From Oikopleura dioica (Eukaryota; Animalia; Chordata): DNA of 64,000 nt. Every line of letters begins with the position of its first letter. The first letter of the stretch is position 1. The translations under genes were made by a program, and so were the position numbers. The notes under the pieces were generated by a model that worked only from the letters and a program-made list of their open reading frames with translations, had not been told where the DNA came from and did no database searches. Positions 4,810-58,392 of the stretch are shown piece after piece. The stretch spans positions 7,378,001-7,442,000 of the forward strand of contig OU015566.1 of assembly GCA_907165135.1 (NCBI GenBank), given 5' to 3'.

Positions 4810-5499
4810 TTTTTCAAGAATTCTCTTTTTTTGGCGACAGGAAATTGGCTTTTTGGTAACTGAAAAATGGACACGAAGAATTTATCAGCGGATCTCAAGA
4901 TCGTGCAGTAACAACTGATTGTTACGTAAGAAGCAGCTGATGACGATCTTTCTTCTCGACCAGGGGTGGATATTTTGATATCAAACCAGTTTTTCAAAAC
5001 TGTCGAATCATTTATTTCATCGTTTCAAAATTTGAAATTTCAATTGAAATTGCAGGAAAAAGCCGATGCAATGACTGAAATCTATTGAAAATGAAAAAAA
5101 AGCGTTTTCAAAAGATAAAGCTTCGTGCGGAGTTTTGAAATGAATTTGAAACTGCAATAATTGACATTTCAATCAGTTTTTCTTGTTTAGCGACTTGAAA
5201 GGAATTTGAAAAATGAAATTGAAAAAATGAATCGTTGCAAATTTGAAGAAGGCGCAAAAGGAAAAACTCAGCGCGCCTGCCATCCCTTTTTGACTCCCGC
5301 ATTTCCAAAAATCCCGTATTTTTAAAATCCTAAATTTATGAAAATCCCGTACTTCTCAAATTGGCGATCGGAAATCGCCAATTTAGGATTCTGCCGATTC
5401 AGGATGATGGGAAATGCGAGATTTTTTTCTTTTGAGTTAGTTGCTTTACCAAATTTTCATTGATTGATCATATAACTTTATTTTCTTGGCTTCTCCACA

Positions 5500-5820
5500 G
5501 CCAATCCCGGCTTCACCAACTTTCATCCCGGCTTCAATAACTTCGATCCTCGCTATACATACGTGAATACTGGTGGCTCAAGCAACAATTCGAGCGTCAC
5601 TTTCTTCAATCCTAGCTTCTCAGATGCCAGTCCCGGCTTCTCAGTTCTCTATAATTGCTTCTTGAATGTAGATCATGGCTTCTCCAAGATTAGATTGACG
5701 TTGGTAAAACCTAGATTGAAACTAATGAAGCCTGGATTGACGTCGAAGAACCTGGGATTGAAATTAGAGAAGCTATGATTGAACTCGATGAAGCTAGGAT
5801 TGAAGAAATTAGGGTTCCAA
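5500..5820. repeat. Degenerate 21-bp periodic repeat in two oppositely oriented arrays
   Basis: Units like AATCCCGGCTTCACCAACTTT / CATCCCGGCTTCAATAACTTC on the left; reverse-complement units (GAAGCCTGGATTGA, GAAGCTAGGATTGAA) on the right. Confidence 0.6.
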
Positions 5821-6522
5821 TTTTCGTCGAAAGAATGTTGAGCTGAGCGAACGGCTGAGCGGTCGACCGCTTAAAATTTTTGAGCGGAGCGAGCGGTTGA
5901 GCTTTTGACAAAAACAGCCGTGAGCTGAACGAGCAGACTTTGAGCAAAAAGACTGTAAGCAGTGTATTTTTTCCCTCAAAAAATACTTTTTCAGTTTTTA
6001 TTTTGAGTATCGACTAGTGTCGGACATAAATTTCCCAAATGCGGCTGAAGAGTGTAAAGAATCTGTAAGAAGTGTTTTGACCAATTATTTCTAATAATTT
6101 CTTTTATTATTTTCTTCATTTACTCACCAAAAACACTAAAGAAAGTATTGACTTACCGCTCAACCGCTCACTGATCTCAAGTTGAGCGAGCGGCTGAGCG
6201 GTCTTAAGAAATGACGGTAGTGCTGAGCGAGCTGACGGGCCGCTCATTCCTTAACCTTTCGACGACAAACGAGAATTTCCCGCACCGACGACAATGTGTC
6301 ATATGACACATCTCCTTTACTGGCCTCTAGAGGCGATTATAGAAACCAAAATTAGACTCTGGAGTCTGGAACAAAACTCAAGCCTCAACTTTAACCCGAA
6401 CTCGAACCGAAATCCCCCAAAAATGTATAATTTTGCCGGCGGAAGATATCTTACCGACGACAATGTGTCGTATATGAAACATAGCCTCTACCGCCTTCTA
6501 GAGGCCATTTTATAGGCCGAAC

Positions 6523-6607
6523 TCCGTGCGCACCAATTTTCAAAATCTGCGTGCGAGGCAAACACGCGCACGCGTGCGCACGGACGCACGCGTGTTTTGG
6601 AACTCTG
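6523..6607. mobile_element. Terminal fragment of the CAGAGTTCCAAAA hAT-MITE family
   Basis: GCAC-type repeats ending GCGTGTTTTGGAACTCTG, the reverse complement of the left terminus of the element at 10262. Confidence 0.75.
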
Positions 6608-8278
6608 CTCAGAAGTCGCCTACCTGTTATTTTCTAAATCCAGGTTACAGAATTCGACGACCTGAGACTGGTAAACCCTGGGTTTACCTTTAAGGTTAGA
6701 CATTTTGAGAACCTTGGTTTGTAAACCCAGGTGACCGCATACCACCGAATTTTCGGTCTTTCTCGATTGGTCTCCGTTTGCCCAGGTCGCTGTTTCCCCA
6801 AGTTGGGCAAACGGAGATCAGCTCAACTCAGTGATTTTTGAAAATGCTCAGCTCAGCTCTGTAGAGCTCTTTATCGATAAGCTTTCTCCTGGTTATTCTT
6901 TAACACTCTCGGTTAGGGTTAGGGTTTGGAAATCGGCGTATTTTGAGAATTACTGCATGCATCTCCTGAGGTGCATGGCTAGAATGATGGATGCACCTCC
7001 TGGCGGGTAAGGATAAAATGTCGATTTGGGGGTAAGGTTAAAACACAGTAAAAACAGCTCAGCTCAGCTCTAATTAGGGTCCGCTCAGCTCAGGTCAGCT
7101 AAAATACCTTAAAAAAATCTGCCCAGCTCAGCTCAATGACCTCTGAAAAAGGCCAGCTCATCTCCGCTCAGCTCAGAGAACTTTATACTCGGGTCAGCTT
7201 AGCTCAGCTCAGCAAAAATATAGCAAAATTTGCAACTCTGCAGATAAGGGCCTTATCTTTTTAAAAAGCAGTAGCTGAGCTTAGATAGCGGAGCTGAGAG
7301 GAAAGTTTAGCTAAGCGTAGCGGAGCTGGCGAAAATTTATTTGGCCGTAGCGGAGCTGGTCAGAATTTTCTTCACTGTAGCTGAACAAAAACCTTTTTTT
7401 CCGTAGCGGAGCCGTCAGCTCCGCTATCTCCGCTACGCAAATTTCCAACTGTGGCCCTACATGTCCCAGTGTGTAGCTCAGTCTATGACGGTAATTTTGA
7501 GCGCAAGAATTCCTTGTCCCGGAAGGTCTAGGAGGTGGTACAAAGTTCGGGAAGTCGACCAAAAATTGGTACTTTTGAAGAAAATTTTCCTTTTTTCTAT
7601 CATTTATGAGTCTAACTTCACTTTTTATACCTCTTCAACGCATTGTGTCCTCCAGTGTCCTCCAAGGCTAAGCAATTTGAAATTGATTTGAAAAATGAAA
7701 ATAGATTGAAAAATCTGTCAAGATTTGAAAACCTTTCGCAAAATGCAAAATGAAACAGTTGAAAATTTCAAAAAAGGCTCGGCGTCATTATCATTTGAAA
7801 TGAATTTGCAATTGCGAAAATGAGTTGAAAAAAGGATTATCTTTTGAAATTTCAAATCAAAAACGGTTGAAATAATGATTTGATATCAAAATATCCACCC
7901 CTGTTCTCGACCATCTTTTTTTTTCTCCTGACGATAAGTTAGAGAAAGTACTGTTATTCATCTTTCTGACGGGAGTTTTATGGAAATCTTTGATTTTTCA
8001 GAAGAATTGTTCTTTTCTCTCGATGACTCATGAAAGCCATTAAATTCTGCTGAGTGTCTCCTTTATTATTTTCTCTGGAAAGTTTCATAATTTTTCACGT
8101 CTTTTCTATTTACGAATTTTTCGAAAAAGGGCATTTTCGGCGCCAGTTTAATTTTTCGCCTCTGGTCTCATTGGCCGCGCCACTCCTCTTTTTTCATTTC
8201 AAAAAAGAGCAATTTTTGAAAAACGCGACTTTTACTGTATTCACTGGAGAGGAAACTGGAGGATTCTTTTGCTTTAGA

Positions 8279-10181: not shown

Positions 10182-12240
10182 ATGTCTTATTACGACCACC
10201 CAAAGCATCAAATTTTTGTCGGGAATTTACCAGATGAAGCATCAATGGAAGATGTGGAGGACAGAGTTCCAAAACACGCGTGCGTCCGTGCGCACGCGTG
10301 CGCGTGTTTGCGTGCGTGCGCACGCGCACGCACTCGCACGCAGATTTTGAAAATCGGTGCGCACGCGCACGCACGCGCACGCGCACGCACGCGCACGCGA
10401 AGATTGAGATTTCGCACGCGTGCGTGATCGTGCGCGTGCTCGTAATCCTAGAAAATTTGGCGTTTTAAGGTCATTTATGCCGAAAATATTTCTAGAATCA
10501 ATTTAAATGCATAAAATTCTCGGTTTTCCTATGTTTCAAAACAATTTTGACTTGGTTTTAGCAATAATTGTTCTAGAATTGTCGATTGAAAAAAATTAGA
10601 GATGCAAAAAAGTGCTAAAAATTTGGCAATTTTATCCCTTTTTGCGCACGCGCACGATCACGCACGCGTGCGCACGCGTGTGCACGCGTGTTCGAAAGTC
10701 GTCTCCGCACGCGCACGCACGCGCACGCGAAATTCTTAATTTCTTCGCACGCGCACGCACGCGCACGCGAGAATTTTGCGTTTTTTGGAACTCTGGTGGA
10801 GGATCTTTTCAAGCCGTTCGGAAATGTCAAGAGCATCAACCTCAAGCCCGGCTTTGGTACTTTTGCTCATCAAAAATGTTGTTTTGACAATTTCAGGTTT
10901 TGTGACGTTTGATGAAGAGGAAGATGCAGAAAGAGCACTTGATTCGCTAGAAAGAAACGCAAAATTGTGCGGCTATCGCGTTGATATAAAGCCTGCAAGA
11001 GGTAAGACGGTTTATTTGTATTTGCATCAATTAAAAAGCCCTTGCTTTTATATTTTTATACAATGATTATAAAAGAAACTTTAAGAAGATACTAAAGATG
11101 TAGAGAGAAACTTCGAGAGAAATATCTCTCCCCAAAGAAGGGATACTCCTCAAAAAAGGGAAACTCCCCAAAGAAGGGGCACTTCCCCAAGAAGGGACAC
11201 TCCTCAAAGACGGAACTCTCCCCCGGTTAGACGGAATACTCCCCAAAGATGGACTTCCCCCGATAGAAGGAACATTCTTGATAGGCTACAAAACTCTCCA
11301 AATAGAAGGAATACCCCTGATAGACGGAATTCTCCTCGTTTTCCTCGAAGGGTTTCTCCAAATAGCAGGGGCTCGCCAGATAGACGGGTTTTCCTCCCGA
11401 ATAGGCGTGGCTCATTCCCGAATAAGAGGGGGCTTCCTGATAGAAGGACTGTTCCTGATAGACGGGGAAATAATCCAGAAAAACGGGATTCCGTTGTTCC
11501 AAGAGTTCCATCTGGTAAGGCTGTTGGTTTCAAAATCTTATATAATCTTGGTGAATTTTATTAAATGGTGATCTGGAGAAAACTTTCTAGTCAAGAAAAC
11601 AACATCTTCAATAACATTATTTTAGTCAGAGGTGACCGAGGCAGATCTGGTGGTCCAGTAATCAGAGATATGCGAAGAAGAGTAAGTTTTCATAAATTTC
11701 TTACTTTTGAAAATTCGTCTTTTTAGCGAAGCCGAAGCAGAAGCCGCACAAGAAGTCGAAGCCGAAGTCGCGGTCGAACTCGGGGCTACAACAGAGGTCA
11801 CAGCAGGGGACACAGCCGAGGCAGAAGCCGCAGCCGTGGACGAAGCCGTAGTAGAACTCGAAGTCCTGTGTATCGACGAACGCCAAAGATTCTGACAGAT
11901 TACTGCTTGAAAGTTACGAATTTGACGACACGCGCGAGCTGGCAAGACTTGAAGGATTTTATCAGAAAAGAAACTGATGTCGAAACGGCTTTTTGTGAAG
12001 CGCATCGAGTGAAAGTCAGAGAGGGACTAGGTAAATAGCCTTTTTGTAACTTCCTCAGTTTCAATCATTTTTACAGTTGCTTTACGAACAAAGAACGATA
12101 TGAAGCTCGTCTTGAAATACTGCGATAACCAGCTTATAAATGGAAAAGAAGTTTTCTTCCACGAAATGATAGTTGATCATCGATCCATCAGTCGCTCGCC
12201 GGTCAGAAATCGTCGAAGGAATGCGTTTCAGAGTTTATAA
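10182..12240 (+). CDS. SRSF4/5/6-like SR protein paralog 1 (RRM interrupted by a MITE; 3' end uncertain)
   Basis: QIFVGNL...EDVE/DLFKPFGNVKSINLKPGFG|FVTFDEEEDAERAL; RS tract at ~11727-11860; pseudo-RRM hallmark SWQDLKDF at ~11937. Confidence 0.85.
10262..10795. mobile_element. 534-bp hAT-type MITE inserted in the first coding exon of SR paralog 1
   Basis: TIR CAGAGTTCCAAAA at both ends; 8-bp TSD GTGGAGGA at 10254-10261 and 10796-10803; GCACGC subterminal repeats. Confidence 0.95.
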
Positions 12241-46660: not shown

Positions 46661-46710
46661 CGCACGCGCACGCACGTGCACGCGAGAATTTTGCGTTTTT
46701 TGGAACTCTG
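46661..46710. mobile_element. Terminal fragment of the CAGAGTTCCAAAA hAT-MITE family
   Basis: CGCACGCGCACG...GAGAATTTTGCGTTTTTTGGAACTCTG, nearly identical to the right end of the element at 10262-10795. Confidence 0.8.
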
Positions 46711-46718
46711 ATTCTTAA

Positions 46719-47470
46719 GGATATAGCCTATGAAATTGAACTTTCATAGCGCCCAAATGCGACGTCGGATCATTTTATTTCAAAAGCAATCCCAACTAAA
46801 AATGTACGCAAAACTCGATTATGGTACTTTTTTAAAATTTTTCATTTGAAATTCTCTCTGTAGAGCGTTTTGAAATCTTACGATCGCGATTTCTCGAAAT
46901 TTTTACATTAAATCGGTCGAGTTTTTTTGATAGAAAGGTAATCTAGACCCTTATCTACAAAATTGTGGTTTCGGTTTTCTCTAATTCCGACAAAAACCGA
47001 TTATAGAGCCATTTCCATGAGGCTTCCTCGGCGCGTGAATAGTGTAAAAAACGCTCCGCTGGGTGCTCAATCTCTCGACTCCTCTTTCCCGAGAGAAACT
47101 GCGCGTTTGAAAGAGCGCTCTGATTGGTTTGACCCAAAAAAGCGCGCATGGAAGAAAAACAGAAGCAAGAAAGAGGAAAACACTAGAATGAAAATTTGCC
47201 CGAGATTGAAAAATTTTCAGCCACAATATTCTAGTTTATCATTTTGCTAATGCAGTCATGGATTTTGTTTTAGCGATTTAATGTAAAAATTTCGAGAAAT
47301 CGCGATCGTAAGATTTCAAAACGCTCTACAGAGAGAATTTCAAATGAAAAATTTTAAAAAAGTACCATAATCGAGTTTTGCGTACATTTTTAGTTGGGAT
47401 TGCTTTTGAAATAAAATGATCCGACGTCGCATTTGGGCGCTATGAAAGTTCAATTTCATAGGCTATATCC
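46719..47470. mobile_element. Kolobok-like MITE with ~197-bp perfect TIRs
   Basis: TTAA at 46715-46718 and 47471-47474; termini GGATATAGCC...GGCTATATCC (RR..YY); arms 46719-46915 and 47274-47470 are reverse complements. Confidence 0.85.
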
Positions 47471-47745
47471 TTAATATGAGTAACAAAAAGTTCTACCAAA
47501 ATCAGGTTGAGAAAATTTTCTCACTAATAAATATATTCGATAAGTTCGCCCGCCCACGCAAAGTTAAAAACTCTCCTGCACCGACTCTCATCTGCACCAA
47601 AAACTCTTCTGCACTTTCTTGCTAAGAAAGCGCAGGTGAGTGAAAAGTGCTAGCGAGATCTGGTGCTAGCGAGTGTCTGGGGCAAGAGAGAGTGCTCCAC
47701 AAATATCGTTTTTACAACCAGTACTGCCCAATCGAATACTAGAAA

Positions 47746-49197: not shown

Positions 49198-52100
49198 TCA
49201 TATTTTCTGTAGCATCTGTACCTTCCTGTACGTATTTCGCTCTACTCCATCTACGTTTTTAGCATTCGAATGACCACGCAGATGATCGAGAATAAAATTA
49301 TTTATATATTCAAACCGAACACTTGTCGATGAACGTATTTCTAATTTTGCCATGGAAATTTTCGTTAGACAAATGTCGATTTTGAATTTCATTTATTTCT
49401 CATTATGTTACGTTGTATTCGTTTTCTCTTTGGAACAAACCAAGGGAGGAAAGATAGGTACGATCGAAAGAGGACAGTTGGTCGGAGTTGAGGATGAGAT
49501 TGCAAATTTCGACTTCTTCGCGGGAAGCAGTCGGCTCTCCAGCCATTGTTCTACCTAAGCTGGACCTGGAAAGGTCGCTCTTGAGACTGGTGAGGGCAGA
49601 CATTAGGTATTCTTTACGAAAGTTATAAATTGTAGACCAGACTCGGCTCATTTTCGTTAAACGACTTGCGAGATGGTTGAGGGCACATCAATCCTAACTT
49701 TTCCTATATTTCGCAAGTCTTTTTCCTTCAGAATTTTCGGCGCTATGTGTAGGAGTCTGAAGTAGACCATTCCCTTGTCTATCTTTGGCAGGGTGGGGAA
49801 AGGTCTACGGCACAGCACGGCACGGCACTGCGGCACGGACACGGCACGGCACGTGCCGTGCCGTGCCGCTCCATTCAGTGAATTTCAGTTTGGACACGGC
49901 ACGGTGCCGCGGCACTGGGGTTAGGGTTAGGCGCAGCCCCGTTCCTTGATTTTTAAATTTAAGGGGCTTGACGGCCCTTCGGGCCGTTTCAGCCCCGTTC
50001 CTTGATTTTTAAATTTAAGGGGCTTGACGGCCCTTCGGGCCGTTTCAGCCCCGTTCCTTGATTTTTAAATTTAAGGGCTTGACGGCCCTTCGGGCCGTTT
50101 CAGCCCCGTTCCTTGATTTTTAAATTTAAGGGGCTTGACGGCCCTTCGGGCCGTTTCAGCCCCGTTCCTTGATTTTTAAATTTAAGGGGCTTGACGGCCC
50201 TTCGGGCCGTTTCAGCCCCGTTCCTTGATTTTAAATTTAAGGGCTTGACGGCCCTTCGGGCCGTTTCAGCCCCGTTCCTTGATTTTTAAATTTAAGGGGC
50301 TTGACGGCCCTTCGGGCCGTTTCAGCCCCGTTCCTTGATTTTTAAATTTAAGGGCTTGACGGCCCTTCGGGCCGTTTCAGCCCCGTTCCTTGATTTTTAA
50401 ATTTAAGGGGCTTGACGGCCCTTCGGGCCGTTTCAGCCCCGTTCCTTGATTTTAAATTTAAGGGGCTTGACGGCCCTTCGGGCCGTTTCAGCCCCGTTCC
50501 TTGATTTTTAAATTTAAGGGGCTTGACGGCCCTTCGGGCCGTTTCAGCCCCGTTTCTTGATTTTTAAATTTAAGGGGCTTGACGGCCCTTCGGGCCGTTT
50601 CAGCCCCGTTCCTTGATTTTTAAATTTAAGGGGCTTGACGGCCCTTCGGGCCGTTTCAGCCCCGTTCCTTGATTTTTAAATTTAAGGGGCTTGACGGCCC
50701 TTCGGGCCGTTTCAGCCCCGTTCCTTGATTTTTAAATTTAAGGGGCTTGACGGCCCTTCGGGCCGTTTCAGCCCCGTTCCTTGATTTTTAAATTTAAGGG
50801 CTTGACGGCCCTTCGGGCCGTTTCAGCCCCGTTCCTTGATTTTTAAATTTAAGGGCTTGACGGCCCTTCGGGCCGTTTCAGCCCCGTTCCTTGATTTTTA
50901 AATTTAAGGGGCTTGACGGCCCTTCGGGCCGTTTCAGCCCCGTTCCTTGATTTTTAAATTTAAGGGGCTTGACGGCCCTTCGGGCCGTTTCAGCCCCGTT
51001 CCTTGATTTTTAAATTTAAGGGGCTTGACGGCCCTTCGGGCCGTTTCAGCCCCGTTCCTTGATTTTTAAATTTAAGGGGCTTGACGGCCCTTCGGGCCGT
51101 TTCAGCCCCGTTCCTTGATTTTTAAATTTAAGGGCTTGACGGCCCTTCGGGCCGTTTCAGCCCCGTTCCTTGATTTTTAAATTTAAGGGCTTGACGGCCC
51201 TTCGGGCCGTTTCAGCCCCGTTCCTTGATTTTAAATTTAAGGGCTTGACGGCCCTTCGGGCCGTTTCAGCCCCGTTCCTTGATTTTTAAATTTAAGGGGC
51301 TTGACGGCCCTTCGGGCCGTTTCAGCCCCGTTCCTTGATTTTTAAATTTAAGGGGCTTGACGGCCCTTCGGGCCGTTTCAGCCCCGTTCCTTGATTTTAA
51401 ATTTAAGGGGCTTGACGGCCCTTCGGGCCGTTTCAGCCCCGTTCCTTGATTTTTAAATTTAAGGGGCTTGACGGCCCTTCGGGCCGTTTCAGCCCCGTTC
51501 CTTGATTTTTAAATTTAAGGGGCTTGACGGCCCTTCGGGCCGTTTCAGCCCCGTTCCTTGATTTTTAAATTTAAGGGCTTGACGGCCCTTCGGGCCGTTT
51601 CAGCCCCGTTCCTTGATTTTTAAATTTAAGGGGCTTGACGGCCCTTCGGGCCGTTTCAGCCCCGTTCCTTGATTTTTAAATTTAAGGGGCTTGACGGCCC
51701 TTCGGGCCGTTTCAGCCCCGTTCCTTGATTTTTAAATTTAAGGGGCTTGACGGCCCTTCGGGCCGTTTCAGCCCCGTTCCTTGATTTTTAAATTTAAGGG
51801 CTTGACGGCCCTTCGGGCCGTTTCAGCCCCGTTCCTTGATTTTTAAATTTAAGGGGCTTGACGGCCCTTCGGGCCGTTTCAGCCCCGTTCCTTGATTTTT
51901 AAATTTAAGGGGCTTGACGGCCCTTCGGGCCGTTTCAGCCCCGTTCCTTGATTTTTAAATTTAAGGGGCTTGACGGCCCTTCGGGCCGTTTCAGCCCCGT
52001 TCCTTGATTTTTAAATTTAAGGGGCTTGACGGCCCTTCGGGCCGTTTCAGCCCCGTTCCTTGATTTTTAAATTTAAGGGGCTTGACGGCCCTTCGGGCCG

Positions 52101-55100
52101 TTTCAGCCCCGTTCCTTGATTTTAAATTTAAGGGCTTGACGGCCCTTCGGGCCGTTTCAGCCCCGTTCCTTGATTTTTAAATTTAAGGGCTTGACGGCCC
52201 TTCGGGCCGTTTCAGCCCCGTTCCTTGATTTTTAAATTTAAGGGGCTTGACGGCCCTTCGGGCCGTTTCAGCCCCGTTCCTTGATTTTTAAATTTAAGGG
52301 GCTTGACGGCCCTTCGGGCCGTTTCAGCCCCGTTCCTTGATTTTTAAATTTAAGGGCTTGACGGCCCTTCGGGCCGTTTCAGCCCCGTTCCTTGATTTTT
52401 AAATTTAAGGGGCTTGACGGCCCTTCGGGCCGTTTCAGCCCCGTTCCTTGATTTTTAAATTTAAGGGCTTGACGGCCCTTCGGGCCGTTTCAGCCCCGTT
52501 CCTTGATTTTTAAATTTAAGGGGCTTGACGGCCCTTCGGGCCGTTTCAGCCCCGTTCCTTGATTTTAAATTTAAGGGCTTGACGGCCCTTCGGGCCGTTT
52601 CAGCCCCGTTCCTTGATTTTTAAATTTAAGGGGCTTGACGGCCCTTCGGGCCGTTTCAGCCCCGTTCCTTGATTTTAAATTTAAGGGGCTTGACGGCCCT
52701 TCGGGCCGTTTCAGCCCCGTTCCTTGATTTTAAATTTAAGGGCTTGACGGCCCTTCGGGCCGTTTCAGCCCCGTTCCTTGATTTTTAAATTTAAGGGCTT
52801 GACGGCCCTTCGGGCCGTTTCAGCCCCGTTCCTTGATTTTTAAATTTAAGGGCTTGACGGCCCTTCGGGCCGTTTCAGCCCCGTTCCTTGATTTTTAAAT
52901 TTAAGGGGCTTGACGGCCCTTCGGGCCGTTTCAGCCCCGTTCCTTGATTTTTAAATTTAAGGGCTTGACGGCCCTTCGGGCCGTTTCAGCCCCGTTCCTT
53001 GATTTTAAATTTAAGGGGCTTGACGGCCCTTCGGGCCGTTTCAGCCCCGTTCCTTGATTTTTAAATTTAAGGGCTTGACGGCCCTTCGGGCCGTTTCAGC
53101 CCCGTTCCTTGATTTTAAATTTAAGGGCTTGACGGCCCTTCGGGCCGTTTCAGCCCCGTTCCTTGATTTTTAAATTTAAGGGGCTTGACAATGGCAGGGA
53201 ACTCTGAGGTGATCAATTTCAGTTACTTCCCAAACCCCACCCTCCCCCATTAACTGTTAAAATACAATTTATCCAGGTTTTTATTCAAATTATGGTTTTT
53301 TTTTTCAGATTTCAAAAAAAAAATTTCAAAATTTTTCGAAAATAATTTTTCACGAAATTTCTCGGCCGATACATACGGTGCAGACGAATTGATCAAGTTA
53401 AATTTTATTCAAATATTTTTGAGTGTTTTTTACGAGAAAAAAAGGAAAAAACTGTGCCGTGCCGTGCTGTGCCGTGTCCCGGCACGCGTTCTTAAATTTT
53501 TTGCCGTGCCGTGCCGTGCCGTGCCGCGGCACAGGAATTTTCGGTGTGCCGTGCCGTGCCGGTGCCGTTGAATTTTCTTAAGACATTCCCCACCCTGATC
53601 TTTGGGATGAGTGGAATCTGTTTCACCACGCGGAGCATTTTCCCACAGCTGAAGATTTCCATCAACAAATCGAAGAGGATTTTCTTTTCATGCTCGTTCC
53701 CTGACAGCTCGTCGAGAAACTCTTCCACTGTTTTATCTCTCCTTTTTAAGAGTTGTGAAAAATGGTAAAATTTGATGAAATTCTTTTGTTTTTGAAACTC
53801 TTTCTGAAGTATCTTGAGCAGAGTTGATGTTTTGCGTCTAAATCGATATCGGCTAGTAGAAGAGTTCTTAGCATCTCGCTCTGGAGGAGAAATTCACCAT
53901 TATCTTTCGTAAGATGCAAGGCCAACAAACGGATTTCAAAATGAAGGACATTATATTTGAAATTCTAATGAAAGAACAGACTCATTCGAAATCCCCACAG
54001 GAAAATATACTCGTCACCAAATTAGCATTTTCTTAATCTGTCTCATTCTATGAAATCCGTTTCTTTGCCCATCTACGCAATCTTTCCCCATCTGGTTTGT
54101 ATGACATCTTCATGCTAACAGCAAGATAGACCAAATAACCCAGAGGATCGTCCAAGTCGCTACTTGATTCGATGTTTTCAAGACAGGTCAAACAGAATTG
54201 CTCATCTTCGTTTCTGCTGGCGAAATCAAGCGCGAACAACAGCCTGAAGATTATCGTTTCTTTATTGTTTGAAGTTGACACTTACCCAAATCGGCCGGGA
54301 TTTTTGGCGTATTCTTTGAATGTTCTCCCGTGCGTCGTTAAAGAAACTGTTTCCAGGATCAATTTGAAGATTACATCTCCTGTTTTGAGTGAATGAAAAA
54401 CGGATTTATCCAATTTATTTTGAATGAGAGGAGACAATTTCTAGAGCTAAACAGAAACAATATCGTTATTTCAAAGTCCACGCACTCGGCGGAACAAAAT
54501 GGGCTTCCGGAGGCGGAAGGCTTTTAAAAAGGTATGAAATTCTGTGAACAGGGAATATATACGGATTTCCCGAAAAGCAGTTTATCACACTTGACATTCA
54601 TTGATTCAAAAATTTATACAACTCTATGAAGACATGTGCCTTTGATTCACTGATAAGACACATTTTTATCAGACGGTAAAAGTAGAAGTGCCGGCAAATG
54701 TGAATAATACGGCCCGAAAGGCATTTATTTATTGAAAATTCTATCATATAAAATGCAATGTTGAGCGTTGTCAAACGTTCCGTTATAATTTTTCTTATAA
54801 ATTTCTTCAAGATTATTGAGATTTTTCAGGCGCTAAGAGAAGCTACTGGGGCAAATGCGACCGATGATTCCTCCAAGCTGGAGAAAGATCAGTCTCCACC
54901 GCCGAGTCGGGGGTTTAGCCAGCATCTTATCGATGGGTATGTTAATTTCTCACATAATGTTGAGGAACTAATTATTTTTAGAAATTACGCAGTTGCCCTG
55001 GACATATTTTTAATGGTAATTTTCTTCGGAATCTGCTTTTGCTGGTCGATTTTCCTGATTGTCATGAAAATGTAAAGAAAAAAATCGTTTCACTGTTCCT

Positions 55101-57874
55101 ATTACTTCAAAAGTTTCCTCACTCCAATTGCCAAGTTGTGTATCTAAAAGTCTGTCCAGGCGAATGACGCGATCAATAAATTGTTCTTCGATCATAGCAA
55201 ACTCTTTTCCAAGCTTCAAGAAGATTCCCTTTGGTAGCAATGCCCTAATGCTGGGGTACATATTGTCACAGCCGATCTTTTTTGAGGATTCTAAAGACAA
55301 TGAGGCTCTGGTAGCGTCCACCGTGACGCATTTCGCGTAGAGAGAGTACCAACCGCAAAATCGTCAAAGCCTCTTTCATGGAGGGCAACCATGAGCCGAT
55401 TCGAAATCCCATCACCTGAGAACAGATTTTCAGAAAATATAGCTTCCCATTCAGTGGCATCTCGACCTTTTGCGCTGACAACGATTTGATAAGGCTCAGC
55501 GGGTGATTTGTATCCATGGCGATGTTTATCACGATGTCTCTGATGATTTCGTCCTCTATTTCGTCCAAAAGTCGCATGGATAAATAGCTGATGGAGATGA
55601 ACTGCTGCGTCTTCCATTCGATATCATCATCAAGGACCCAAACTGACGGGTCGAGAATCGTCGTAATGAGCTCAAGAAAGTCTCTTTTCGACATTAACCG
55701 ATTGCACCAGTGAAGAGAAGCGCCTATGCAAAAAGATGTATGAACTGGATCTTCGTACATTTGGTCCATCCATAATCTTATACGCTTATAAGGGAGTTTT
55801 TGTACGTTTCCGATTCTAACATATGAAAGAATATCTTCTATATAAATATATACAATTTATAAGCGTTTCCTGGACATCTTGGCAATCTCATCTGAGCTCT
55901 TGAAGAGCGGAAACTCGGGCTTTCGGGGATAAAATAATGCGATTTTCTATGACTAGAGAGGAATCTAAGTTCACCGAATTTCAAGCTGTTCAATTTTCCA
56001 TATTTGAACCTCGAGATATTTGAAAATATTGATATGAACCCCTTCTTTCCGAACAGTGCTATTTTTTCGATTATCGATAGAAGTAAGGTCCCACTTTCCG
56101 GCGCAGGGCCGCGAAAATGGCTCGCTTCCAAGTCTCCATTTTCATCCGAAAAGAGTCCGACGATGTGATGCACTGAAGCCGTGTTTTTATGGAATTGATG
56201 GAAGTGGAATTAATACTTACAAGCGGGGATAACGCTGTTATAGTAGTATTTGTCGAAGAAAGGCATTTCTTCTTGACTAATGACAATATCAATTATCAGA
56301 CTAAATTCGAGCTCCTTATCATAATAGGAAGCCTTTATCGCGGTAAAAACAGGAGCTCTTTCCTGAGAAAATTCAAACAAGTGGATATTTCCATGCAATT
56401 CGGGTTTTCCTTGAAGCTGAAGAGGTAGTCTCCAACGATGTCCATAAAATCCATCTGCAAAAAATCGTCCAGCATTCCTGGAAATTTTAAAACACAAACG
56501 CGGAGCACTGAAAACTCTCCAGAGGAAGCCTTATTTGGTGATATTCGACGCCTGTTCTGTCCCTTAGTGGAACATATAATCCTCAGTGGAAACTTATCGA
56601 TAGACTACTCGTGCCGAAGACGTGCGCAGTCTCAAAAAATATGATATATAAATAGGGTTATATCACTTTCCTTGGCTCTCAGCCGATTCAAGATAGCTGG
56701 AATGGACTTAAAATTGATGAAAAACCAGTTTATTACTTTAAGTACCTGTTTGAAGAACTTTTGATCGATCTCTCCTGGTGGAATGTTGTGAATGATCATG
56801 CACATCCAGCTGAGGTCCTGATCTCCGATGTCATCCGTAGTTAGGATTTGCTTGAGGACAGCAGATGCAAAGCCATCTTTGAGATTGACAGGCATCTTGA
56901 GGAGATGGAGGGCTTTCATAAATCCCGGCCGGAAAGTGAAGAATGGAGAAGTCATGACCACATCTTCGATATCTTCTCGTAGATGATGAAGCAGACCACT
57001 GTATCTCTCAAGTGGGTAGTGCTCTTCTTTGATATTCGTAAAAACAGTGGCGAGAAAGACGACGCCTTCTTGCATCGGAATCGTATGCTTTTCGATCTTC
57101 GATATAGTTTCCTTCGTAAACGCGTCTTTTCCGCGCTCATGAGTAATTCGTATTTCGAGAAAGGCGAATTTAAGACTTGCAATCATTCTCTGAATCCTTA
57201 GTCCTGATCCTTTTTAGAATGAAAGAAAATTCTTAAACGAAATTTATGCGGATAAGACTTCGATCTTCCGCGGAAATCGTCGAATTCATCATGTCCCTGT
57301 CTATCAGAAGATCAAAATTTAATAAAGCGTGTCCTAGCATTTCAAAATGAACATCTCCAAAAAGGCCGAAGAATTGCGAGAATGCTCCTTGCAGAATGAA
57401 TTTTGCTTCTTCACCTGGTTCTTCGCGATATCCGACTAGACAGGAGAAAATTTAATGTATAGGATGATTCAAAACTGTTCCTACCTTGTGTACCAAAGAT
57501 TATGTACGACTCGAGAAGAGCGAACATAATTTTTCTGTACTCAATATGCCGCAAAAATTCTTCAATCATTGCGGTCGTGACATAATCGACGAAGAATGTC
57601 AAATGCTGAAGAAAAGTCGAAGGCCCTCGTGAGTCGACAAGCAAATTCAAATTGCAAAATACACACCTAAGAAAAAAGTTAGGAGCTAATGTTCTTGTTA
57701 CTCGAGATAGAATCATCGACATTGAGAATTTCCTACGCATCTGTTTTGTCTAGGATTCAATCCAAATTTGCCCCAAAAATTCCGTGAAGAAACTTACCCT
57801 CCTTGACTCTTGAACAAATTGTCGCAACTGCAATATTTTTGAGGAACATTCTCATTCGGATTCATTTCTCTCAT
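49198..57874 (-). CDS. Large multi-exon, predicted alpha-helical (ARM/HEAT-like) protein, family unassigned, interrupted by a hAT element
   Basis: Chain of Leu/Ile-rich minus-strand ORFs (57411, 56632, 56210, 55838, 55266, 55010, 54048, 53746, 53492, 49657, 49403, 49198) separated by short introns; frame KQIPLIPK/IDKGMVYF is continuous across the insertion. Confidence 0.7.
49789..53597. mobile_element. 3.8-kb hAT-type element carrying a satellite, inserted in a coding exon
   Basis: 12-bp TIR CAGGGTGGGGAA at both ends; 8-bp TSD ATCTTTGG at 49781-49788 and 53598-53605; GGCAC/GTGCC subterminal repeats. Confidence 0.92.
49934..53189. repeat. Tandem satellite, 54-56-bp unit, ~58 copies
   Basis: Unit CAGCCCCGTTCCTTGATTTTTAAATTTAAGGGGCTTGACGGCCCTTCGGGCCGTTT; variants are almost only T4/T5 and G3/G4 run lengths. 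Confidence 0.99.
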
Positions 57875-58392
57875 CTGCTCGTTTTTTTTAAGTTTTTGTT
57901 ATTTCACGATTATGGTTCCCCATTTCGCTCTAGAAAGAGAGAGAGAGAGCTCGAGTCAAAAAATAAGTCGCTGCCCTGCTTATTTTGTGTTGCCATGAAA
58001 TCAAGAGAAATAACATTCCGACCACAAATGTGGATCTATTAATATATTATAATAAAAGTAAGTCGAGGTAAAATACAGTTTCTATGAGAGGTATAAAATA
58101 GTAGTGCAGTGGTTTAAAAATTAAAGCTACAGTAAAAAGAATTCGGTCAAAACCGCCATTTCGGAAGAAGCAGTCAAGGTATGGTCGATAAAGAAGGAAA
58201 TTTATCACGTGAGTATATGAATTTTTGTCGCTAGAAATAAGACAAATGCCGTGTATTCGGTCAACCAAAGCTTAAATACGGGCAATTGGCAGATTTTTTG
58301 GCGATTTTTGAGGAGAAATATTGTTACTCACATGATTCACATAAAAAGAGCTCTAAGTAGTTGATGTTCAGGAAGAAGTTAAATTGAAAGTT

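Follow-up and report, generated by a model that had tools for sequence, protein, structure and literature searches.

A young, polymorphic hAT insertion in a coding exon of Oikopleura dioica, with an in-frame GT-AG pair at its ends

When a DNA transposon sits in a coding exon and its two ends happen to supply a GT and an AG, is the insertion tolerated as a new intron, or is the gene that carries it broken? This question is raised by a non-autonomous hAT element of 3,809 nt at 49789-53597 of the window, by which we mean the 64,000 nt of chr1 of the Okinawa O. dioica reference analysed here; the sense strand of the host gene is the minus strand. A first-pass annotation had seen in this element a candidate introner, that is, a transposon that generates spliceosomal introns. 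Our analysis leads us to favor, with modest confidence, a recent hAT insertion into a small Oikopleura-specific gene that most likely breaks the gene on the haplotype carrying it.

The element and its host gene

Hallmarks of the hAT superfamily are an 8-bp target site duplication (TSD), short terminal inverted repeats (TIRs, about 10-25 bp) beginning YAG, and subterminal repeats at both ends, and the target consensus is nTnnnnAn. The element has an 8-bp TSD, YAG-type TIRs and subterminal repeats at both of its ends (Table 1). The TIRs match at 12/12 positions with 0 mismatches and are the only two perfect matches to CAGGGTGGGGAA in the window, the ends carry CAGGGTGGGG, and the TSD is perfect (8/8), with A at position 7 on the sense strand and T at position 2 on the opposite strand; flanks of other copies of the element begin AT(C)(T) in three of four cases. 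When the whole window was scanned for TIRs of 10 bp or more between 8-bp direct repeats, the hits were confined to this element, two other hAT-like elements and matches internal to repeats, which places the transposition signature far beyond chance. No transposase ORF is present in the 3.8-kb element or in a 2.9-kb element at 4961-7903, and no autonomous partner was found within the window. With non-autonomous hATs of the Ac/Ds, hobo and Hermes type and their MITE-like derivatives the element shares the 8-bp TSD, the short TIR starting with CAG, the subterminal repeat arrays, the lack of a transposase gene and an exact empty-site polymorphism, whereas it differs from them in that 85% of it is a homogeneous 56-bp satellite seeded beside two TTAGGG units.

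Table 1. Features of the 3.8-kb insertion and of the interrupted gene (window positions)
Feature	Positions	Strand	Remarks
Predicted GT-AG intron, 3,811 nt, net +6 nt	49783..53593	-	Sequence prediction only
TSD, upstream copy, CCAAAGAT	53598..53605	-	In sense order 53605-53598
TSD, downstream copy, CCAAAGAT on minus	49781..49788	-	In sense order 49788-49781; contains candidate acceptor AG 49784-49783
TIR, CAGGGTGGGGAA on -	53586..53597	.	First in sense order (53597-53586); contains candidate donor GT 53593-53592
TIR, CAGGGTGGGGAA on +	49789..49800	.	Perfect reverse complement on the sense strand (49800-49789); pyrimidine tract ahead of candidate acceptor
Subterminal GTGCC/GGCAC repeats, high-coordinate end	53454..53570	.	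22 nt perfectly complementary to 49807-49828
Subterminal GGCAC(G)/GTGCC repeats, low-coordinate end	49807..49916	.	Probable transposase-binding motifs
Two telomere-like TTAGGG units	49917..49932	+	Immediately ahead of satellite
56-bp tandem satellite	49934..53189	.	58.7 copies, 98% matches, 85% of element
AT-rich unique internal segment	53190..53453	-	Sense AATAAA at 53409-53404 and 53285-53280
First coding exon of host gene, inferred	53799..53874	-	ATG 53874; MLRTLLLADIDLDAKHQLCSRYFRK; both SNPs synonymous
71-nt GT-AG intron upstream of interrupted exon, inferred	53728..53798	-	10 SNPs between haplotypes
Host exon, part upstream of element	53598..53727	-	MEEFLDEL...IPLIPKI; in no published gene model
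Host exon, part downstream of element	49704..49780	-	Published g1968 begins at ATG 49770
92-nt GA-AG intron of published g1968	49612..49703	-
Last coding exon of host gene (published g1968)	49403..49611	-	Wild relative protein 89% identical

The insertion site is coding, as the first-pass annotation had held. It is in frame with an annotated CDS that begins 11 nt downstream, and the second haplotype of DNA sample X2 differs by 5 SNPs in the two upstream exons (4 of them synonymous) against 10 in the 71-nt intron. By reconstruction we infer a small, Oikopleura-specific host gene of about 163 aa. The published annotation has no intron bridging the element and cuts this gene in two: nothing is annotated from 54047 to 49771, the upstream exons are missing, and g1968 (91 aa) begins at the first ATG past the element, a start at an internal Met that is most simply explained as a prediction artefact on an interrupted gene. 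GA-AG introns are believed to be placed by the gene predictor only where RNA hints support them. The unannotated interval, the start of g1968 and its GA-AG intron thus together suggest that RNA of the 3′ part was seen, and that no canonical junction across the element was.

Two other gene structures were rejected. The interrupted exon might have been the last coding exon, ending at the read-through stop at 49657, but the mapped published protein continues past this stop via the GA-AG intron to 49403. We likewise discarded a single large gene taking in every minus-strand ORF between 57.7 kb and 49.4 kb: the published models, together with a synonymous SNP immediately ahead of the stop at 54048, show that a gene of 278 aa terminates at that stop and that the interrupted, small gene stands apart from it. 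Protein searches with the ORFs around the insertion site gave no matches, and Pfam and ESM Atlas returned no family for the host gene or its neighbour. A HMMER search with the 184-aa exon of the upstream neighbour gene recovered only short fragments from wild relatives, on metagenome contigs of 0.5-2 kb that stop short of the site.

Age of the insertion and RNA at the site

In sample X2, one DNA contig runs from window positions 49751-49780 straight on to 53598 and thereby shows the precise empty site, with a single TSD copy. As this is the DNA of another animal, the insertion is very recent and still polymorphic in O. dioica. At 53665, 67 nt from the junction, the sole X2 contig shows a non-reference base, so that the insertion-bearing haplotype is unseen there, and further upstream a haplotype identical to the reference is present. 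Other X2 contigs carry the same element terminus with different flanks, and the terminus has about tenfold depth, which argues for a multi-copy, recently mobile family. The single-TSD empty site, together with the TIRs, the TSD and the subterminal repeats, bears out the hAT identity that had been proposed for 49781-53605. It is hardly credible that a long-read assembly misplaced the element in the exon: although satellite-rich content could confuse assemblers, nothing specific points to such an error, and the perfect 8-bp duplication, the perfect TIRs at the junctions and the matching empty site indicate a real transposition.

Three bulk RNA runs (X15-X17) have zero depth on the host exons. 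RNA reads at 53453-53568 all continue into other sequence and derive from related copies of the element elsewhere. In the collections searched, the site was not spanned by any transcript-derived protein or contig, and no match came from scanning metagenomes with a pattern for either junction, empty or +6 (0-6 nt gap), or from a protein-guided scan. The evidence from the published annotation is indirect, given low expression of the gene, small RNA depth, and pooled animals that may for the most part have the empty allele.

Nascent intron or broken allele

On the sense strand the candidate donor GT falls on TIR positions 5-6 and the candidate acceptor AG on TSD positions 5-6, preceded by a pyrimidine tract, CCTTTCCCCACCCTGCC, that the far TIR supplies. 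Splicing here is predicted to turn the empty site ...LIPKIDKGMVYF... into ...LIPKIRIDKGMVYF..., with the junction AAGATCAGG/ATAGAC; the +6 nt scar would be in frame, placing Ile-Arg where there was Ile, with no stop. Position of the GT, position of the AG, intron length and the in-frame +6 nt were all reproduced as the first-pass annotation had given them. To judge from their sequence, the donor AGG/GTGGGG and the acceptor (a 17-nt pyrimidine-rich tract, then AAAG) look usable. The 5′ consensus of 16 unique introns of the window is loose and A/T-rich after the GT, in a sample too small to score the candidate donor; given a consensus this weak in so crude a sample of splice sites, GTGGGG stays plausible as a donor.

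Unspliced sense RNA, on the other hand, would meet a stop after 34 codons, at 53494-53492, just beyond the AT-rich segment, and AATAAA 188 and 312 nt into the element. Predicted to cofold at -156 kcal/mol, against -105 kcal/mol when kept apart, the two element ends can pair through their inverted repeats into a highly stable RNA duplex, in which the GT as well as the pyrimidine tract would be hidden.

If the spliceosome used the GT of the TIR and the AG of the TSD to remove 3,811 nt, the insertion would be close to neutral and might in time be fixed as an intron. We consider this unlikely, though it deserves to be weighed with care. The in-frame geometry and the good pyrimidine tract ahead of the AG speak for it, the terminus is identical on either strand so that every insertion carries a GT, and a second exonic element, in another gene of the window, also has the +6 layout. 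Furthermore, O. dioica shows rapid intron gain and has 11% non-canonical introns (PMC8008620), introns of MITE origin are established for another larvacean, the related Fritillaria (PMC11282704), and exonic Ds1, likewise a hAT element, is spliced from maize transcripts at sites no more than 35 bp from its ends (PMC5432752, citing Wessler 1991). On the other hand, there are no junction reads, the host gene being silent in the three RNA runs, and the published annotation, which made use of RNA hints, leaves this canonical GT-AG pair unused. An intron of 3.8 kb would moreover be about 80 times the genome's median (49 bp, PMC8008620), AATAAA and a stop lie near the donor, and the GT and the pyrimidine tract are inside a potential 12-bp G+C-rich stem that complementary subterminal repeats lengthen. 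An AG in the TSD is also found at a non-coding insertion, and thus gives no evidence of selection. In view of the empty allele elsewhere, the split annotation, and the stop and two AATAAA just inside the element, the introner reading is somewhat disfavored, and the indirect evidence leans against tolerance based on splicing.

It is more improbable still that the cell handles the insertion in some other way, by alternative in-frame sites or by expressing the two halves separately. A GG-AG intron starting 3 nt further in would leave +9 nt, and an AT-AG intron exactly at the duplication would be scarless; by reasoning, the latter is the only scarless choice with an AG acceptor among the offsets within the duplication. 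Introns of the GA-AG, GC-AG and GG-AG types do occur in O. dioica, and the intron that follows in the host gene is itself GA-AG, but AT-AG is outside the usual types in this species and no RNA supports any variant. Alternatively, transcription of the downstream half could start inside the element or immediately beyond it. A separate annotated model, g1968, does begin right past the element; against this stands the simpler account of its start given above.

We therefore return to the broken allele as the reading we prefer. Transcription on the carrier haplotype would enter the element and run into the stop after 34 foreign codons and into the AATAAA signals, and with no efficient splicing to rescue these transcripts the host gene is most likely broken. 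The in-frame GT...AG would then be a by-product of a CAGnGT terminus, which is a typical hAT end, combined with an integration preference that tends to place AGA at TSD positions 5-7. As the genome is extremely gene-dense, young hAT insertions will often land in exons by chance, and an assembly from a single individual would catch them ahead of their removal by selection.

The two other hAT-like elements of the window bear on this point. The element at 10262-10795 (plus strand; TIR CAGAGT, TSD GTGGAGGA) sits in an exon of another gene and has the +6 layout, whereas the 2.9-kb element (minus strand; TIR CAGGGGT, TSD GTCGAGAA) is non-coding and nevertheless has AG at TSD positions 5-6. The geometry first described for both holds on checking the sequence. 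The argument that a shared geometry reflects tolerance by splicing fares less well: the layout is real in two exonic elements, but it carries little weight when the AG at TSD 5-6 is also seen outside coding sequence. Its presence in the non-coding element and in some other copies of the family points to an integration preference and not to survival by splicing. It is doubtful that we are dealing with an active chordate hAT family pre-adapted as an intron, with CAGGGT on any transcribed strand and AG at TSD positions 5-6. Were it so, any exonic insertion would be flanked by GT-AG, leave exactly 6 nt and hence be tolerated, and such insertions could feed the rapid turnover of introns in Oikopleura, an introner mechanism caught while polymorphic in an animal.

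Comparison with known systems and significance

Among animals, Oikopleura is the classic example of large-scale intron turnover, and where its new introns come from is unsettled. Introners are reportedly the subject of work by Huff and colleagues in 2016. Those of Micromonas, Aureococcus and other aquatic eukaryotes resemble the present case in being DNA transposons with TIRs and TSDs, in which one splice site comes from the element and the other is co-opted from the duplication (PMC9860276; PMC11282704). They are, however, short, and hundreds to thousands of almost identical copies are spliced as introns, as transcripts confirm (PMC9860276; PMC11282704), whereas here there is one large copy at the site, known from sequence alone, for which both splice sites and the kept frame are predictions. 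Introners are typically 100-300 bp and uniform in length, a range that the 3,809-nt, mostly satellite element falls outside. Among animals they have been found in only two groups (Gozashti et al. 2022, PMC9860276).

Exonic Ds/Ds1 elements in maize, whose splicing from pre-mRNA was shown by cDNA (Wessler 1991, cited in PMC5432752), are similar in that an exonic hAT has candidate splice sites a few bases from its termini and a near-normal in-frame mRNA is possible. Ds1 is about 400 bp with its splicing shown by cDNA, while the O. dioica element is 3.8 kb with splicing predicted only, and the candidate acceptor comes from the target duplication and not from the element. The larvacean Fritillaria borealis, of a related tunicate lineage, has non-canonical introns derived from MITEs, with TIRs and TSDs at their borders, so that transposons are neutralised by the spliceosome (Henriet et al. 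2019, summarised in PMC11282704; PMC13326754). These are short and fixed, for the most part with AG-AC or AG-AT borders, and they depend on a modified spliceosome (PMC11282704; PMC13326754), in contrast to the canonical GT-AG pair and the polymorphic 3.8-kb insertion considered here.

As the same haplotype has both carriers and non-carriers, a polymorphic exonic transposon with built-in in-frame splice sites would permit a direct population test of intron birth. Even if the allele is merely broken, it shows present-day mobility of hAT elements in the Okinawa lineage, and it shows that a reference from a single individual carries gene-disrupting insertions that mislead annotation, in this case by splitting one gene into an unannotated 5′ half and a 3′ half called a separate protein of 91 aa.

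The insertion and the gene it interrupts

The window corresponds letter for letter to chr1 (OU015566.1) of the Okinawa O. dioica reference GCA_907165135.1, on its opposite strand. The insertion of the 3.8-kb element at 49789–53597 (3,809 nt) into a minus-strand host gene is real and recent. In a contig from X2, a set of DNA contigs from another sample of the same study, the sequence continues to the left of 53598 with 30 letters identical to 49751–49780, and this 53598/49780 junction is an exact empty site with a single copy of the target-site duplication (TSD). In other X2 contigs the identical element terminus adjoins different flanks, and its depth in X2 is about 10 times the single-copy depth, from which it follows that the element family is multi-copy. 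A haplotype identical to the reference is present in X2 at 53672–53830 and 53889–54028, yet at 53665, a position 67 nt away from the junction, the sole X2 contig bears a non-reference base. Hence the haplotype with the insertion cannot be seen at that position, and an empty haplotype that is nearly identical is still segregating. As X2 contigs can miss rare alleles, we do not claim that the insertion is absent from X2. An assembly artefact, in which the element would have been misplaced into the exon, we regard as highly improbable.

The structural hallmarks of the element (terminal inverted repeats (TIRs), TSD, end motifs and no long ORF) point to a non-autonomous member of the hAT superfamily. 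The TIRs are 12 bp long and perfect (CAGGGTGGGGAA), and are the sole two perfect matches within the window. Arrays of a GGCAC(G) motif lie at both ends, with one 22-nt stretch perfectly complementary end-to-end, and two TTAGGG units precede the internal satellite, behind which lie 260 nt of unique, AT-rich sequence. No long ORF was found in the element, nor was a transposase partner for it in the window. Besides this element, a scan for the same signature across the window returned two further hAT-like elements; its remaining matches were repeat-internal.

Features of the element and of the host gene (window positions)
Feature	Position	Strand	Size or copies	Remarks
TSD CCAAAGAT	53605–53598 and 49788–49781	minus	8 bp	perfect direct repeat flanking the element
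Satellite in element	49934–53189		56 bp; 58.7 copies	98% identity
Putative unannotated exon	53874–53799	minus		begins at ATG; upstream of element; SNP pattern
Putative GT-AG intron between the two upstream exons		minus	71 nt	
Putative unannotated exon	53727–53598	minus		abuts upstream side of element; SNP pattern
GA-AG non-canonical intron of g1968	49703–49612	minus	92 nt	directly downstream of interrupted exon; published model

In the published annotation, a 278-aa gene ends at 54048 and the 91-aa model g1968 occupies 49770–49403, with no model between. The start of g1968 is the first ATG past the element, 11 nt from the TSD, and the model is in frame with the open reading frame that crosses the empty site. 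The second X2 haplotype has five SNPs in the two upstream exons, four of them synonymous, and ten in the intron that separates them, and because these SNPs are mostly synonymous and denser in the intron, we infer that both exons are coding. Joined to g1968 via the empty site, they would give a reconstructed protein of 163 aa with a putative start codon, into which the element is inserted at codon 69; the insertion site is coding. It seems that a single small gene was divided at the transposon in the public annotation, with the exons in 53598–53874 in no model and g1968 starting at an internal Met. For the reconstructed protein we found no Pfam family and no informative ESM Atlas neighbour, and a wild relative encodes a C-terminus 89% identical to it; the host gene is an Oikopleura-specific orphan.

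Geometry of the proposed splice

The first-pass annotation proposed that the element is a candidate introner, removable in frame as a GT-AG intron, and the sequence bears out each part of this layout. The donor GT at 53593–53592 occupies TIR positions 5–6, the acceptor AG at 49784–49783 occupies TSD positions 5–6, the far TIR supplies the pyrimidine tract before the AG, and the predicted intron of 3,811 nt would leave 6 nt behind (+6), turning ...PKIDKG... into ...PKIRIDKG.... When all offsets within the TSD were enumerated, AT-AG was the sole scarless option with an AG acceptor; AT-AG is not among the usual O. dioica intron types. An alternative GG-AG pair 3 nt further in would leave +9 nt.

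The same annotation had noted a shared geometry, which we also recover: the hAT-like element at 10262–10795, in a coding exon, has the identical +6 layout (TIR CAGAGT, TSD GTGGAGGA on the plus strand), and that at 4961–7903 gives +7 (TIR CAGGGGT, TSD GTCGAGAA on the minus strand). AG stands at positions 5–6 on one strand in all three TSDs, including one outside coding sequence, and among the X2 flanks of other copies of the 49789–53597 element's family, three out of four start with AT(C)(T). For these reasons the TSD AG looks like the outcome of a target preference of the nTCT/AGAn-like type. The GT is just a part of the CAGnGT terminus, and given both, +6 arises automatically, with no need for selection. 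The +6 layout is a precondition of an introner mechanism and no evidence of one at work.

In introners, one splice site comes from the element and the other from the duplication (PMC11282704; PMC9860276). The mechanism proposed here is identical, with a TIR donor from the element and a TSD acceptor, but the element does not have the length of an introner. PMC5432752, citing Wessler 1991, describes the exonic maize hAT element Ds1 as spliced from transcripts via sites near its ends, and our element resembles it as an exonic hAT with predicted splice sites near its termini. In Fritillaria, a related larvacean, introns derived from MITEs are established, with ends that are non-canonical (PMC11282704; PMC13326754); the pair proposed here is GT-AG.

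Evidence bearing on splicing

Three oligo-dT RNA runs, each of about 1.5–1.8 Gb read, were mapped to the donor side of the element, and depth was zero across 53600–54400 in all three. Metagenome and assembly collections, searched at both the protein and the DNA level, yielded neither a contig nor an ORF that crosses the site, empty or spliced. To our knowledge, GA-AG introns get into hinted gene models only if RNA hints back them, and since g1968 contains one, RNA presumably reached the 3′ part of the gene. The reference annotation drew on RNA-seq hints obtained from the same culture (PMC8008620), and none of its models spans the element with a canonical GT-AG intron. That this annotation does not bridge the element counts against efficient splicing, if weakly, because the empty allele may predominate among the pooled animals, and its gapped reads would have non-canonical ends.

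Unspliced RNA would reach a stop at 53494–53492 after 34 foreign codons, and AATAAA occurs in sense orientation 188 and 312 nt into the element. Cofolding of the two element ends gives −156 kcal/mol, against −52 and −53 when each end is folded singly, and the modelled end-to-end duplex would take in the GT as well as the pyrimidine tract. This argument is two-sided, as pairing could also bring the splice sites together. The median intron of this genome measures 49 bp (PMC8008620), and the proposed intron would be about 80 times as long. In a strict set of 16 window introns the 5′ consensus is loose and A/T-rich, and the donor GTGGGG is atypical but possible against a consensus of only 16 introns. 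The indirect evidence (annotation, stop and AATAAA, duplex, length) leans against efficient splicing.

The observation is thus confirmed and the introner interpretation is unproven. We somewhat favor a recent gene-breaking polymorphic allele; a nascent intron removed via the +6 GT-AG pair is possible but doubtful, and handling of the element by other processing is unlikely. The locus offers one more genotypable test site for intron birth in Oikopleura.

Neighbouring haplotypes, repeats and relatives

Across 53672–54400, X2 has two haplotypes, with a depth ratio of roughly 1:2. One matches the reference exactly and the other differs from it by about 8% across the intron-containing 53672–53830, reflecting either very high polymorphism at this locus or pooling within the sample. 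In the satellite-filled stretch 49917–53189, the 56-bp repeat begins directly behind the two TTAGGG units. RNA reads from three runs match the subterminal GGCAC-repeat segment 53453–53568 (summed depths, both read directions, about 30–75), and as all of them run on into unrelated sequence on both sides, this RNA comes from related element copies transcribed elsewhere in the genome.

Contigs from Tara Oceans and other marine metagenomes are about 95.6% identical over 2 kb to the neighbouring upstream gene (56249–58330), and a second metagenome contig set is about 71% identical to it in exons; public ocean data thus contain wild relatives at two divergence levels. A perfect 201-nt inverted repeat (46715–46915 and 47274–47474; spacer 358 nt) begins 5 nt past a solo end (46698–46710) of the CAGAGTTCCAAAA transposon family, the family of element 10262–10795, and a truncated end of the same family (6520–6607) is nested within the 2.9-kb element at 4961–7903.
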